This document shows positions 28,954 through 39,300 of a DNA stretch of 57,376 bases, piece after piece (the stretch's first letter is position 1; each line of letters starts with the position of its first letter). Below the pieces are notes generated by a model. That model worked only from the letters and a program-made list of their open reading frames with translations. It ran no database searches and was not told the origin of the DNA. The translations under genes were made by a program, and so were the position numbers. The stretch covers positions 1 to 57,376 of the forward strand of contig JAHLWZ010000120.1 of NCBI GenBank assembly GCA_020536535.1. Direction: 5' to 3'. This DNA comes from Pelomyxa schiedti (Eukaryota; Protista; Evosea).

Positions 28954-31268
28954 ATGACCGAAGGCCCTGCGGAGATACGCCGCGTCATGACGTTGTCTCG
29001 TGTGGTGTGGGACTTCGTCATCGTTCCCACAATCCTCGACCCCGCCGTCTCTCGTTGCGACTACATGACCTTCGAGGGCTGCTGCTGGCTCGCGGGCGTC
29101 GCGGACGCCCTTTTCCCCCTTGTCCCGAGGGCCTGCCGCGCACTTATGGGCGCCACCCTGACGAACTGCAACGACTCCGGCGTCGGCGAGTACACCTACC
29201 TCGTCACGTCGCGGTACGTCCCCCTCGAGTGCGCCGCGATCGTCGGGAGCACGAGGTGCATCGAGTGGATCCTGGCGCACACGAGAACGAGGAACCCGAG
29301 GAAGGAGTCCATCGAAGTGCTCGAGTCTCTTTGCATTGGTAACTAGTTCGTCACTGAAATGGGCTTATGGGATTAAATGTTACATAAATATATTAACAGG
29401 TGTTTATTGTCTCTTTAATAAGTGAATTGCGAGTCTCTTTGCATTGGGAGTTGTTAAAGCTTATATTACCATGAAGCCATAAAAAAATAACACTCCATCT
29501 ATAATATTAATATTAAATAATTGTTGTTTTGAGTTGTGAAGAATATTGTCATTGATTTGTGTAAAACGTATTGATTGTTATTGTAGGAGGAAAGCTTGTG
29601 ATGGCACAGGAGTTCGTTGACAGTGGAGATATACCGTGGAGGGGAGGCTCATTGAGGTGGCCTGTGCATGATGCTGATATGCTGGATTCCCTCAGGGAGA
29701 TGAGTGAATTCTCCACCACAAGCCTTTTATATGACGCATGCAGAGGAGGCAATTTGGCTGTTGTCAAGTGGGTCATGACGAGGTTTGTTGGCCTGGGTGC
29801 GGAGCCGTGGGAGCTTGTGGGACCGTTTGAAAATGCTCTGAGACAGGGCAATATTGAGGTTGCGCAGTGGATGGAATCCTCAACTGGTGTGGTTAACTCC
29901 TGCAAGCCACATATTGTCATACCAAATCGCCCGTGTGCTGCTAGTGTATTTTTGGATGTTGTGAAGCTCTGCATGAGGGTGTTCAAGCTGAATCGTTGTG
30001 ATATAGAGGAATGTGGCCCTGAGATTATGGCGAAGTTCATCCAGCATTGTTCAAATGAGCAAAGTGGTCACGAATTTCAGGCAGGGTGTGCGTGGATCAA
30101 AGAAAATTTTGGCATGAAGAAGTTCAGGAAGATTCGTTGGATCAAAGGCAGCAGGGGTCTCAAGTGGATCGTCACCAATTTTCCTGTCAAACCAACACAG
30201 GAGCTGCTTTCGCATGCATGCAAATCAACTGATTTGGAGCTTGTTGACTGGCTGTTTGCCAAATTGCGTTTTGGGGAAGTGACCCCAAAAACAATCAAGA
30301 GTGCATGTGCAAACGAGAAGGACAACGTCGAAATTGTGAAGAGTTTGTTGGCCAAAGTTCCACGTCCCACCCCAGATTTTGAGCGCAGCTTACTGGAGAA
30401 ATCTCTTTCCCGAAACAACACTGCCATTGGAGAGTGGTTGGATAACACATTCCACGTGATGGCAGCTGTGAATTCTGTTCCCAGCGATACAGAGAGCCTA
30501 TTCTCTAAGTTGTGCGCCAAGAACCAAGGTGGAATGGGGGGAATTCAGTGGTTCCTTTCACGTGCAACAATGCGCAACATCAGTGGAAAAACAGTTCTCT
30601 CAGCCGTCGAGGAATCACCTTGCATCACCCTCACGTTGTTTTTGATGAAGCAGTTCAATGTAAGCATTGCTCATAAGCCGTCAATCATCAGGAAGCTGCT
30701 TGAAGACGGGGATGTTTCACAGGCCAAGCAACTTGTCACCTCTGCTGAACTGTTCTCTTCATCTGAGGTTCAGGAGGCCTTTTCAGAGAGTTACCAAGTG
30801 CAGTCCGGAAAAGTGGTCAAGTGGGTGTTGCAGCAGTTTCACCTGAGTGAAGACCAAGTCAAGGTGAATGACAACCAGTTGTTGGCGAACCTGATTCACT
30901 CGAACAAGGTCGGGTGCACAGAGTGGTTCATCCACACATTCCAGGTGAGGGTGGATGAGCTAGTCAGAATGGCTGAGCGGACCAAGTGCCACGGCATCAC
31001 CTTGAGCATGTGGAAGATGCTGATGCGAGTGCTTCCTGAAATGACGGCGTCCATCGTGAGGAGCCACTTCATGAAATGGGCGGTCACGACGCCACTGCAC
31101 ACCACAGTCACAATGAGAACTCTGGGTATCACAAAGGCTGATGTAGACTCGTACAAACAAGATAGTCACGACGACGAAAGTGACGAAAGCGACGAAGGCG
31201 ACGATAGCGATGATAGTGACTACAGTGACACTGATGAGGACAGTTCCGCAGAAGACAGCGATGAATAA
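28954..31268 (+). CDS. ankyrin-like 'SRVVWD' family protein (A1), 2 exons, acidic tail
   Basis: Exons 28954-29338 and 29587-31268 join in frame (SLCIG|GKLVMAQ). Ankyrin-like motifs LLYDACRGGNLAVVKW, ALRQGNIEVAQW, HACKSTDLELVDWL. D/E/S-rich C-terminus. Confidence 0.85.
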
Positions 31269-31374: not shown

Positions 31375-31600
31375 ATGACGGCTGCGGAATCGAGTGCATC
31401 ATCAGGCAAGAGACCACAGCCACCCGCCAACGACGACACCGCCGCTAGTGGCCCACCAAACAACAACAACCAACCTCAACGTCAACAAATCAAACCAAGT
31501 CGACGTACTCGCCGCCTGGGCAGAGTCGTCACAGTGGCGCCGTCCTCGTCGTGCACGGCGCCCGGCACAACAACAAAAGCACAATCAACAGCAGCCAAAA

Positions 31601-31632
<32 letters not shown>

Positions 31633-32984
31633 ACAACAACAACAACAACCACCACCACGGCGAGGGCGGCGGGCAAAGCGACGGCGATGGACCAAGTTGG
31701 CGCGATGGCTGCGGGGACGCACCCGCGGTGCGGCGCGCGGTGCCCACTGCTGCGGCTGACGACGCCGGCGACGGGCGACGGCGGGGACGACTCAATTGTG
31801 GGATGCCGCGATGGGGATGGGAACCTGGTCGTGAGGCTGCTGTGGGCGTGGATCATGGGCGGCTCGAGGCTCTACTACGTCAAGTGGTGCCCCCGGGGGC
31901 TGGATCCGGCGCACGTGGCGATCTCGTTCGGGGTGTCCCCGGCGCTGCTGTCGCTGACGCACCAGATGAGGTGGTGGATGGACACGGGCCTCGGGATTGT
32001 GGGAGCCAGCGAGGACTACCTGGTGGTGCTGGAGTACTCGGGGTACTACCTCCAGGAGAGGGCCACCGGCAAGAGGATGAGCTTGCCGCCGCCGCCGCGA
32101 AGCCAACCCTGGTCGGAGTATCGGAAGGCAACAAACGGGAAGTGGCTGGTGGTTTGTACCTGGCCCGAAGGGCACATGCTTGTTCAGGAAATACCAAGGA
32201 AGAGCCGCGGTGAAGAAGCAACGGCAGCAGCAACAGCAGCAGCCATCGTCAGGAAGCCAACCGTTGTGGCGATTGATGGAAGGTGGGGAGATATCACGCC
32301 TAAGTTTGTGTGTGGCAACGAAGACCAGTTGCTCCTTCCCTGCCGTGCTTATGACAGCGGACCCACACCATTTTTTGAGCTCGTTCTCGTGGATGTTGCG
32401 CAGACGTGTTCATCCAAGAAACTGACAGTGTTGAGTACAACTGTTCCAAGATTGGATGACCTGCCGCCAAACCTTCGCAGCTATGAGTTATTTTTTGACG
32501 GCTCCTGGTTTGGATTCCACAAACAGAACGAGAGTGGTGGCACGGCTGTTTTGTAATGAAAAGGAGCCCACACTCCTTTGATCCTTTTCCCTCTCCATTC
32601 ATGGACTTCATAAGAATGGATGAGGGAACAGGAAAACTGCAACCAATGTTCCAGCCTGTGACAACTGATCTTTATTCTTGGTCACAGCTGAACCAATCAC
32701 AGTTCTGCGTTTTTGAGGTCAAAAAGGATGCCTATGAAGTGTGGGATGTGAATGAAACAAACAACCCTGTGAGAACAAACAAGTGCCCCACTGGTTGCAC
32801 AACCCAGCTGGATTTTGTTGAGGGTGGCCTGCTGTTCCAACTGAGTGAATCACACAAAGAGATTCACGTGACTGAGGAGTCCTCTGGTGCCCACGTAATC
32901 ACGTTCCAGGCACTCAGACCCATAACAGCATACGTACACCTGGAACATTACTCTTTCCCTTCCAAATCCCCCTCTGACACTTGA
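31375..32984 (+). CDS. 'RCG-SP motif' family protein (E2) interrupted by a 1-nt frameshift at ~32550
   Basis: MDQVGAMAAGTHPRCGARCPLLRL; TNGKWLVV. The ORFs 31375-32556 and 32556-32984 join as NESGGTAV(F)VMKRSP if one T is added to the gttttg run, matching EDQSGQNVFIVET in E1. Confidence 0.7.
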
Positions 32985-33105: not shown

Positions 33106-36100
33106 TTATTGGGAAAGTACAGTATACAACCAATCAAGACCATCCTTAATGCCATCACCAGTTCGGGTACTGCAGCCTTGTATTCTCCAATGCTTGTGTG
33201 AGAGCTGTGGTAGTTGATGAAGTGACATGAACTCACTTACTTCACTGACTGAGAGGCTCTGTGGCCAGTCTTGCATATTGGCTGTGGTTGTGTTGAACAA
33301 GTGGTGAGTGAGTAGGAGTTTGTACATGGACAATTCCAACTTACCAAGAACCAGAATAGGAATTCCGGCGAGTTCTTTCAGAGTGACCAACTATTGTTTA
33401 CATTAATTGGAAATACTTTGGTAATGAAAACAAACCCTCATAAATTCTGCACCGGCTTCAGGCATCCTGTGCAAATATTTATAAATATTAGCACAATAAT
33501 ATCAGAAGAACCGGTCAAGGTCATGGGAATCAACCACAAAAATTAATGCACAAGTCTGCTTGTAATCTAATGGGTGTAAGGTTCAATTTGAGAGAGGGAC
33601 TGTACACTGATGTCGGGGTCTTGTTCTATCAGCTTAACACACTTAATTGATTGGGATCTCAATTCTGCAAGAAATTACATACCGCGGCAGACATCCTTTT
33701 ATTGTGATCAAATTAGATAATGAAATAATGCAGCTTACCCAAGAAGTGAATATAAAATTTTTACAGGGTACAGATTCAACGTCTTTTTAAACAGTGAATG
33801 CAAGTGGTTTGTGAGTTGGAAACATACTGAAGCCGATTGTCGGTATTGTTGTTTCCACCGGACCAAGGTTCAGTTTCCAAAGCATTGTTGTTTTTCCTGG
33901 TGACATTAAGAGGTAGGTATTTTGTTGGTGGAAAACGATACCAGCGTCATCCAACCCAAGAACTAATATCATTGATTTCGGTGAGAATAGAGATTTACCT
34001 ATCCATGATACAAATGAAAACCTAGAAGACTGTTCTGCTTCGAGGTATGAACCAAAGGACGCCTTCTGCACTGCCCTTTTCTTCTGGGTTGCCACAGAGA
34101 ATAATTTCTTCCAACCCCCTGTATAGCTGTTGAAACCTGTGAGACCTCTTCCAAATTTGAAAGGAAAACACACCTGGAGGGAACAAATGCAGTGGTCGGT
34201 AATGTTGAGGTTGTTCTAAAACCCCAACTCTCTTTGGAATACAACACTTTCCACAAATTGTTTTCTGTGGCAAAGAAATACATGGCCTGACAGGTTTGTG
34301 ATAAATGACAAAGGCTGCGAAAGTCTAATAAGAAGAGAATCTCCCTGGGAATCGTTGGAAGACTGTGAAGAAATGGAAAACTAACCGAATTATAGGCGGA
34401 GGAAGTTGTGAGAGGAATCCGCGGGGAAGCTCAGGAGCAGTTGTTTGGTCTACCAGAATTGCACTGCATCTTGGCGAAAAAGCAATGCAAGCACTTGAGG
34501 CCCACCCACAGGAAATTTGTGAAACAACAAGGCGATCAACAGCACATATTCTCTCTGGAACGTTTCTATCCTTTTCATCTCCAAGTCCTAAAAGAGGGAA
34601 TGCCTAGGTTTTTACTGTATTCTCAAAGAGAAGAAAGAAGGAAAGAGGAATCATACCCAACTGACCATGCCCGTTTGAGCCGAAACCGTATAAACCATTT
34701 GTGAATGTCAAAGCAAGGGAATGAGCTTCATAATTGGACCCTCCACCTGCCACATGCTGAACATCAGATTGAAGGCAGCTCACAAATGTGGGGGTGTTCC
34801 GTCCCTCATTGTCACCCACTCCAAGTTGTCCATGCCTTCTTCGAAGTTATCAATCAAGCCGAGAATGAGCTGTTCATACAAGTTATCACCAAATGAGAAA
34901 AGCTGGCCGGGTTCCACAACCACAAGTGAATGATTGGCCCCACAGGAAACTTCTCTCACTTTGTAGGTGGAAAAAAATGTAAGCATTTTTGGGATTCGTA
35001 CAGACACCTTGATTTGTTTAAGGTCAAGTTTGTGGTAAGAAAGTGAGTACCTCGTCAGCATGACCTGGTGGTGTTGTGTAAGAAACGAAATTGACATGAA
35101 GAGAGGTGCCCACCCAGTTGACCCGCGAGTCCACAACCCCAAGAGTACAATCTTCCTTCAGAGTCAACAGCAAGTGAGTGATTACTTCCAGCACTGGCCA
35201 ATACGATTTTTATACCTTTTGGGAAGGTGCAAGGACGAAAGTATACTCTAAATTGAATTATAAAGTACAGTGTCAGTGTAGGAAAATACGGTTCCTCAGT
35301 GCTCTCCATGCCAAGTTGACCCATAGTATTCTTTCCCACTGCCCATAGCAAGCCAGTGTCAGTAACAGCCAGGGTGTGGTCTTTGCCAGCTGAAACCGAT
35401 GTCACAAACCCTTTGTGGAAGTTAACATGGAAGTATGGGAAAGGGGAGTAATAACATCCAACGCCTAAGCGACTTGGTTCTTGAAATGTTATGCCAGGAA
35501 TATCAGGTGCGCTTTTACTGATATAAACTTGGCTCCACTTCAATACCTCACGGCTCGAAGTTGAGTAAGTGTTGCACTCGTCACAGGCTATTCTGCTAAA
35601 GGGATGAGAAGAAGCAAAAAGAATGCGCGCACACGATGTGGTACGTCCAAAACTGTGCCTGGTTGGAGACCACGAACTGGGACCTCCCCAGGTGAACAAA
35701 CATCCATCTGCAGCGATAGCAGCCATGTGTCTTTTGTGTTATGGGAAGATTGTTATGAAAGGGAAAAAAAAGAAGGGATCCAGAAGAAGTAATAACTTCG
35801 CACCTTGCACCACAGGATATTGCAACAGGCCCAGGTAATCCCGGCACCTCACGTGGTGTACTTTGGTGCTCCTTCAGCACATCAATATATGTACACATAC
35901 ACTGTTGTTTAGTGCACAAAACAATACGTTGCAGTCGGGGGAAAAAAAAAAAAATTGCAACACCCAAAAAAAAAAAAAAAAAAAAGCTAACCAATTGTGC
36001 TGTGCTGGTGGTGGTGACTGTTGTGGCTGTGGCCGGTGACAGTGGCGGAGGGTATCCAAGTTGGGACAATGAAGTACATCCCCACGTATAACAGCAACAA

Positions 36101-36153
36101 AACGACAGCGGAGGCAGCGACGAAGATGACCATGGGGCACCGTTGTCGTCCAT
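33106..36153 (-). CDS. RCC1-repeat / F-box / ARF-family GTPase-domain fusion protein, many exons
   Basis: RCC1 repeats (VSAGKDHTLAVTDTGLLWAVGKNTMGQLG, ASAGSNHSLAVDSEGRLYSWGCGLAGQLG, VSCGANHSLVV, HSLALTFTNGLYGFGSNGHGQLG), F-box-like LPTIPREILFLLDFRSLCHLSQTC...NNLWKVLY, then ARF motifs ILVLGLDDAG|KTT, TIPTIG, LIFVVDSHDLDR, IPILVL|ANMQD, WRIQGCSTRTGDGIKDGLDWL. Confidence 0.8.
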
Positions 36154-36339: not shown

Positions 36340-39300
36340 ATGATCGGCGTAACGTTCGTTCCCCGGGAGATTCTGGAAGATGCGATTCGGGACCACGTGG
36401 ATGCCGTACGCCAATGTCTTTTTATCTTGTTCCGTCTCCCCCCTTTTTGTTGAGACGAAGCACCGCTGACCACACCACCCTGCTGTGAACCGCATTCCCG
36501 ACAACACACACAAGTCTACCACGACTCCGGACTGGCGCCAACAGCGCCGATCGCGCGACCGACAAAGAGAGCTGGATCAGAGGCAGAACCAGCAACGAAC
36601 TCTGGCACAGCAGTCGGTGCAATTGTCCCGGCCACACGAAGTGGAACTACGGAATCCTGCGCAGAAGAGTGGCACGGTGGAGTATGTAGTGGCCAAGAAG
36701 TACCCTGAGGAACAGGGCCTGGTGTACACTGGAAGGCTTGTCGATGGCCTCCGCGATGGAAGAGGCAGGGCCACGCGGGACTGTAAAGGTGGCTGGATAT
36801 ACGCAGGGAGCTGGCAGGCTGATGACCTGCATGGCCCTGGGCAACTCATCATGGGTGACACTTACTTCAAGGGTGAGTTCTATGCAGGGAAGCCGCGTGG
36901 GTGGGCTGTACACACCGAGGGTAGAATGTGTGAGTACATGGACGAGGGGCTGTTTTTGAATGGAGAGATGCTCAGAGGAAGGAGATCAATATATGGCGAG
37001 TTTGTGTATGATGGTGACATGACCGAATGGCGTGGCTGTGATGTGCCAGATGGGTGGGGAATGAAGCTAAAGGAAGCACCACTGGATGCCTGCATTTCTG
37101 AACCTAGTGAACTTCATCTACTTGAGAAGCAGTTCTTATTTCCAATTGGTCCATTCCTAAGGTATGCTGGGCAATGGAAGAATGGTGCAATGCATGGAGA
37201 TGGTGTGTGGCTGAAGCGTCCTGGTGGAAACCTATACCAGGGAGTGTTTGATTCTGGGAGCAAGGAAGGAAGTGGGAGAATGATGTTTGCTGATGGTGGA
37301 ACTTACACAGGTGACTGGGTAGATGGAAAATTTCACGGCAGAGGCAAGAGAATATGGGCATGTGGTGATTATTATGATGGACAGTGGGAGGGTGGGAAAG
37401 AACATGGAATGGGAACAAGAATATGGGTCAGTGAAGGATTATCCTTCACAGGGAAGTGGAAAGGGGGTGAAATCACTGAAGGTACTATGAAGTGGAAAAG
37501 TGGAGATGAGTTCACTGGTACCTTTCTTTGTTACCAAAACACCTTTAAAGTGGCGAATGGTTTGTTAAAGACTCAGTGGGGTTCTATCCACGGAATACTC
37601 AGCCAGAATGGAAACAAATTTGAAGGAGATGATGGTAGTTTGTTATATGATATTGGATCCTCCTCCCCTGAGGTAATCCCAGCAGACATGTTGTGAAAGA
37701 AATAAAAAGACTCTTAATGAAATGCATAAAAGCCTTACCATTTTGAAAATGAGTAGGAAAGATTTTTGCAAGTACAAGTACAGCACATGACTGAAGAGAA
37801 GGCGGAGATAACAAAGAGAGCTTCTCAAATGCAAGTAGATTTTGCTGAGCTGCAACGCAAGTGTGGTAATTTGCTGCAGCAGTTAGAAGAACTGCAACAG
37901 AAGTTCAATGAGCAAACTGAAGGTGTGTTTCTCTAATATGGCTACACCCTATTCAACCTATTACAGTGTTGAAAAATCTGCAAGCAAGGCAGTTCGATTG
38001 TCCTGAGAACTGTGTGTTCGTGCTCGATCACAATTTGACTTATCACCTGCTCTAACCTCACAGTTATCAACCACGTTTTGGGACACCTACATGGTGGAAT
38101 GTGGAACAATTCACTCCATCAAAAACAAATTCGCAAATCACAAGATGAAGACTGTCTTGCTCATGAATCTCTTGAGGAAGAAGAGGTGTCAATTACATTG
38201 GAACCGCATAATGAAAAATTTACACAAGTTTTCTGTTGCAATTGCCCCCTGAACAAGGTTCTCAACTCCCATGTGACTCTTCTCACAGGGCACCAAGGTG
38301 GTTAGGATGGCCATTGAGAGAAAGTTTGGTATCGACGAGAGCCTTCAGATTGTGTTTTTCCTGAATTCTGATGGTATTGCCATCCCACTGGAGGATGACA
38401 TTCCCTGCACACTTAATCATATGAAAGCACGTTGCCACAATGGCCTTGCGCCCCAACAGAATCGACCAGCTGCAGTGACAGTTAAAATCAAGCCAGCCAC
38501 AAGACTACAACAAGAAAACTTGCAATACATTGCAATGATTGGCTCTGGTGCCTTTGGCATTGTTTCAAAATTTTCTCTTGATAAGAGCACGGTTGCAGTG
38601 AAATCTCTTTATGAAATTATTGAGTCAGAGCATAACCTGGAAAGATTTCAAATGGAGTCGGAGGTTGACCTGCTGACTTTTTGTCCTTTCTATTTAGCTA
38701 ACAAATGAGGCAGATTGTTGCTGAATTGAGGCACCCAAACATTGTTAAATGCATTGGGACGTGTCTAACAAGTTCAGGAAAACTGTGGATTGTGTCCGAA
38801 CTTATGGGCTGCAGTCTCAGTCAGCTGATTGAAAAAGTGGGTGAATTAAAGTGCCTCTAATAGACCAATTGAGTAATTTGTCATAGAAACACAGTTTTAC
38901 TTTGCCGGAAACTATTTCAGTACTACTTGGTATTTCCAGAGGAATGTCTGCAATTCATCAGTATGCATTTGCACACCCCTCTTTTGTTGATCCACATTCA
39001 CAGACAAAATATAATGCACCGAGACCTGAGCAGCAGAAACGTGGTGTTTGACTTTGATGGATGTCCGAAAATCATTGATTTTGGTTTTTCTTTCTTTCTT
39101 TGCAGGACTGGCTTAAAACTGATGATATCCTGCAGGTGTTGCTAGCCGATTTTCCAATGCAGGGAGCCGGAAAACCATTGGTCCTGGAAATTTTCTATAT
39201 ATGGCTCCTCAGATGTATACCAGCAGCTATACAATTAAGGGCATGAAAGCACCGTCTTTTTTCACTCTGAATTTTTCTTGTTCTATCAGGGGATGTATGG

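Follow-up and report, generated by a model that had tools for sequence, protein, structure and literature searches.

An Amoebozoan F-box protein of Pelomyxa schiedti that combines an RCC1-like propeller with a degenerate Arf1-derived domain

The gene encoding KAH3766686.1 (protein P0001 in our analysis) of the anaerobic amoeba Pelomyxa schiedti joins an RCC1-like propeller, an F-box and an Arf1-derived G domain in a single chain. With a probability of about 0.6 we regard its product as a single-gene, multi-copy Amoebozoan F-box protein, predicted to act as an SCF adaptor, whose Arf part would be a pseudo-GTPase interaction surface. The gene lies in contig JAHLWZ010000120.1, which was analysed as one stretch of 57,376 nucleotides (hereafter the window). 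The DNA of the window is eukaryotic in character, with short GT-AG introns.

Rebuilt by coordinates, the fusion gene comprises 20 exons on the minus strand, separated by introns of 39-120 nt with GT-AG boundaries in 19 of 19 cases. The ATG is located at 36153 and the stop codon, which is included in the coordinates, ends at 33106; the span of 33106-36153 given in the original prediction is thus exactly that of the coding sequence from start to stop. The spliced translation of 685 amino acids is identical to KAH3766686.1, which is named 'ADPribosylation factor subfamily protein [Pelomyxa schiedti]' at NCBI, and the gene is therefore already annotated. This 20-exon model with its three Pfam domains bears out the proposal that RCC1, F-box and Arf parts reside in one gene. 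The joined exons were used solely for local translation, i.e. for the reading frame and the identity with P0001, and searches from the DNA were run with individual exons or pieces. The features are listed in the table.

Features of the fusion gene, in positions of the window
Feature	Position	Strand	Basis
Coding region, 20 exons, 19 introns	33106..36153	-	translation identical to P0001
RCC1-like seven-bladed propeller, residues 21-381, exons 1-10	34484..36093	-	Pfam, solved relatives, AlphaFold2
Exon 10, last blade and first 10 F-box residues	34386..34587	-	exon map; RCC1 match in piece 34328-34603; F-box profile from residue 405
F-box, residues 405-449, split by 41-nt intron 34385-34345	34239..34414	-	Pfam; model helices 410-451
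Linker, residues 450-520	33979..34238	-	family alignment, coordinates, low model confidence over 492-520
Arf1-derived G domain, residues 521-681, exons 12-20	33121..33978	-	Pfam Arf; ARF1 solved relatives
P-loop (G1) GLDDAGKT, intact, split by 45-nt intron	33889..33957	-	exon map; G, K, T columns invariant in family alignment
Switch II (G3), DVCRA, mainly micro-exons 33695-33683 and 33632-33606	33559..33747	-	DNA alignment with L001, protein alignment
G4, NMQD instead of NKQD	33268..33279	-	protein alignment, paralogue reading

Three of the exons are micro-exons of 14, 13 and 27 bases (35064-35051, 33695-33683 and 33632-33606, minus strand), all with canonical splice sites, and both switch II micro-exons are common to a paralogue on contig C3. 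A genetic code with TGA as a sense codon was considered for the stops near switch II and dropped, since these stops fall in introns. An intron in common with ordinary Arf1 after the WRH codons was also considered; here the phase is off by one base and no claim is made. The fusion gene has a head-to-head neighbour on the plus strand, an open frame of 403 residues that contains MORN repeats (36485-37696); the two starts are about 330 bases apart and may have a common promoter region. Two further open frames are found on the plus strand of the window, an intronless one of 565 residues with weak ankyrin matches and an acidic Ser/Asp-rich tail (29571-31268), and one of 393 residues with runs of Thr, Gln and Ala and no Pfam match (31375-32556).

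The domains were identified by Pfam both in separate minus-strand open-frame pieces and in the whole protein. Among the pieces, RCC1, RCC1_2 or WD40_RLD matches are present in five between 36207 and 34328, an F-box-like match of 28.8 bits (cut-off 24.3) in the single piece 34002-34430 and Arf matches in three between 34215 and 33109. For whole P0001, WD40_RLD matches residues 21-381 of the propeller with 6e-65 and 220 bits (cut-off 150) along with five RCC1 repeats that likewise exceed their cut-off, and Arf matches residues 521-681 with 8.1e-48 and 162.6 bits, above its cut-off. The F-box motif, put to the Pfam HMMs, passes the cut-offs of both F-box-like (6.9e-8, 32.6 bits against 24.3, profile positions 1-45) and F-box (6.8e-7, 29.4 bits against 20.5, with near-complete profile coverage). 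Its presence had been predicted correctly, but it had been placed at ~34330-34220, while it actually extends over 34414-34239 and contains an intron. The best solved relatives of the propeller are UVR8, HERC1, RPGR and HERC2, and those of the G domain are ARF1 chains (5.5e-45), ahead of ARF6 and ARL1.

In the AlphaFold2 model of P0001 (mean pLDDT 71.9) the propeller has seven four-stranded blades, the F-box is helical and the G domain adopts an Arf fold; the expected number of 6-7 RCC1 repeats fits these seven blades. Within the propeller, pLDDT is 85-95 across residues 160-385; confidence is low at the linkers (including residues 492-520) and in switch I and switch II. Based on the family alignment, the linker ends in a segment resembling the N-terminal amphipathic helix of Arf, which is here internal to the protein. 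An N-terminal myristoylation glycine is absent: the Arf domain begins at residue 521, and the start of P0001 is not Met-Gly. No RING or B-box family is found among the Pfam matches of P0001. The propeller sits N-terminal to the F-box, an arrangement that is unusual for F-box proteins. Many RCC1-like domains are binding modules only.

P0001 belongs to a multi-copy family. With the F-box exon as query, 15 other places were matched in the 52-Mb Pelomyxa schiedti assembly, and at 10 of 13 loci fetched from this genome the exons for propeller, F-box and Arf are arranged in this order on one strand. The family thus has at least ten other loci in the genome beside the gene of KAH3766686.1. Overall, P0001 and its nearest paralogue are 51% identical, a divergence at which silent sites are saturated, with 60% identity in the Arf domain, 50% in the F-box and 49% in the propeller. 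Two loci, L003 (G000:C952:21000-26000) and L008 (G000:C875:47800-52800), carry F-box and Arf exons and have no propeller exons, and the product of L003, P0006 (320 aa), starts at the F-box. An insertion of about 21 residues is present in switch II of P0006, and a run of N marks an assembly gap in the Arf region of the paralogue L006 (G000:C567:10100-15300).

In a protein search the 84-residue F-box exon retrieved eight proteins, of which four belong to the family; this query is too short to reach other genera. When residues 400-685 of P0001 were used in a word search, family members in other genera were reached; the matches include P0003 (51% identity, 97% coverage), P0016 (37%, 99%), P0024 (35%, 95%) and P0067 (32%, 99%). 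For Mastigella eilhardi and Luapelamoeba hula, Trinity transcripts yield proteins with the same three-domain order, and RCC1, F-box and Arf also follow in this order in one metagenome protein. Ordinary two-exon Arf1 genes are found in the Pelomyxa schiedti genome at no fewer than 25 loci on many contigs, with ~115-131 bits per exon. The three that were read (L014-L016, at C127:59074-59668, C1132:12675-13270 and C4:149285-149899) all keep the Met-Gly start, DVGGQ and NKQD.

The ordered ARF motifs of the original prediction are present for G1, G2 and G5, while G3 and G4 are degenerate. In the alignment, P0001 keeps the P-loop GLDDAGKT, the switch I threonine in the stretch TTIPTIGF, and G5. In contrast, G3 reads DVCRA where Arf1 has DVGGQ, so that the catalytic glutamine and both switch II glycines are gone. 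DNA alignment with the nearest paralogue, L001, shows that one codon of switch II is deleted and the tryptophan lost within the same two micro-exons. G4 is NMQD compared to NKQD in Arf1, and the lysine is kept in all eight other paralogues read. Against the Arf profile, P0001 scores about 55 bits less than its nearest paralogue does. As Arf is nevertheless the best-conserved domain in comparison with this paralogue, the changes are concentrated in the switch rather than spread by decay.

The glutamine is lost well beyond P0001. It was found in no family member examined, comprising seven aligned proteins, eight loci read in three frames and MbaArf1e of Mastigamoeba balamuthi; E, P, A or G occupies its position across the family. 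This makes GAP-stimulated GTP hydrolysis improbable throughout the family, as judged from the sequences. In the literature we found no description of a family-wide loss of the catalytic glutamine. Some nucleotide binding may persist in the Arf domain of P0001, given its intact P-loop, switch I threonine and G5 and the fact that Arf is the best-conserved part. The replacement of DVGGQ by DVCRA and of NKQD by NMQD renders it unlikely that the propeller of P0001 regulates a functional GTP switch, and the same substitutions make the built-in small-GTPase module that had been proposed doubtful for this protein.

Arf fusions with ubiquitin-related domains have been described before. Vargova et al. 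2021 (Genome Biol Evol, PMC8358228) report that some lineage-specific Arf family proteins bear BTB or F-box domains and read these fusions as recurrent recruitment into ubiquitin circuits. Their supplementary table 1 lists two Mastigamoeba balamuthi proteins of the Arf1 group, MbaArf1e and MbaArf1f, with 'RCC, F-box-like', and the supplementary table also gives 'Kelch repeats, RCC, F-box' for a protein of Thecamonas. The claim that no three-way fusion had been described does not hold in view of the two Mastigamoeba entries, which have been catalogued only and never studied functionally. Like P0001, both proteins consist of RCC repeats, an F-box-like motif and an Arf1-group domain in this order and have no N-terminal myristoylation site. 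MbaArf1e also shares the absence of the catalytic glutamine, reading DVGGE, but, in contrast to P0001, it still has the glycines and the tryptophan of switch II as well as NKQD.

Animal proteins provide further points of comparison. TRIM23/ARD1 likewise combines a ubiquitin-ligase module with a C-terminal Arf1-derived domain, and TRIM23 relatives are among the matches to the Arf region of P0001. However, TRIM23 has RING, B-box and coiled-coil parts and is itself an E3, while P0001 pairs an F-box adaptor with a propeller and has no RING among its Pfam matches. The Arf domain of TRIM23 is moreover close to true Arfs (PMC8358228), whereas that of P0001 is degenerate. The two fusions are of independent origin. 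Mammalian FBXO24 shares F-box and RCC1 with P0001 and lacks an Arf domain. In FBXO24 the F-box is ahead of the RCC1 repeats. FBXO24 co-purifies with SKP1, CUL1 and RBX1 (PMC10932545), and by analogy a protein with F-box and RCC1 parts can work in an SCF complex. In animals, the E3 HERC1 binds ARF1 through its RCC1-like domains, which are able to free ARF1 of its nucleotide (PMC6692442). HERC1 is a HECT ligase to which ARF1 is a separate protein, whereas P0001 carries its Arf-like domain within the chain and would depend on SCF for ligase activity.

An SCF-receptor role of KAH3766686.1 can reasonably be inferred from its sequence. It is plausible because the F-box passes the Pfam cut-offs and the Pelomyxa schiedti genome encodes both Skp1 (matches at five or more loci) and cullins (matches on several contigs). 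By docking on Skp1, the F-box would connect the protein to a cullin ligase, and the proteins to be ubiquitinated would be held by the propeller, the Arf-like domain or both. The Arf part of P0001 is most likely a fixed interaction surface, i.e. a pseudo-GTPase and not a nucleotide-driven switch, because the glutamine, both DVGGQ glycines, the switch II tryptophan and the NKxD lysine are all lost. KAH3766686.1 is thus most likely an SCF adaptor with a non-switching Arf-like domain. More speculatively, the family might use a hydrolysis-dead Arf as bait, so that Arf effectors, GAPs or coat components are held on the SCF ligase for ubiquitination, and P0001, with its rebuilt switch II, might have moved to nucleotide-independent or new partners; we give this only a minor chance of being right. 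If true, it would tie the membrane-traffic machinery to degradation.

Three other explanations have to be weighed, which we rank in falling order of likelihood as a residual switch, early pseudogenisation and mis-merged annotation. The Arf domain could still switch with GTP and thereby gate the ligase adaptor, possibly being loaded or read by the propeller on the same chain. The preserved P-loop, switch I and G5 are in line with such a function, as are the position of Arf as the most conserved domain between paralogues and the ability of the HERC1 RCC1-like domains to bind ARF1 and release its nucleotide (PMC6692442). It is weakened by DVCRA in place of DVGGQ, by the tryptophan and the codon missing from switch II, by NMQD in place of NKQD and by the catalytic glutamine, which no family member examined retains. 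Also, the Arf exchange factors known so far are Sec7-domain proteins, which speaks against loading by a propeller. On balance we consider a working switch unlikely. Alternatively, the gene could be a decaying paralogue that drifts towards a pseudogene. Among the loci read the functional motifs are lost only in P0001, its Arf score is below that of its relatives, and no independent transcript is on record, NCBI being the only source. Against this, all 20 exons are open and all 19 introns have canonical splice sites, micro-exons of 13, 14 and 27 nt included, the deletion in switch II amounts to exactly one codon, and 49-60% identity to the nearest paralogue is maintained across all three domains. 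Decay therefore appears less probable still.

Finally, the annotation might have wrongly merged two adjacent genes, one for an RCC1 protein and one for an F-box/Arf protein. Paralogues that consist of F-box and Arf without a propeller do exist (P0006 and the locus L008) and would be compatible with such an error. However, exon 10 of the gene runs without interruption from the last propeller blade into the F-box, of which it encodes the first ten residues, and only about 20 residues separate propeller and F-box in P0001, so that there is no gene boundary between these two parts. This is further supported by single assembled transcripts from two other amoebae that hold all three domains, and we regard a mis-merge as highly improbable.

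As the predicted adaptor with a non-switching Arf-like domain, KAH3766686.1 joins a known but unstudied family and opens no new class, because the gene was annotated and its domain combination was listed in 2021 for the sister genus Mastigamoeba. The family extends past Archamoebae into Discosea, as represented by Luapelamoeba, and through expansion it numbers ten or more copies in the Pelomyxa schiedti genome alone. The glutamine for GTP hydrolysis is absent from all members examined, and P0001 is further along towards a pseudo-GTPase. The family thereby offers a natural series on how a small GTPase fold may be reused as a fixed binding module in a ubiquitin-ligase adaptor.
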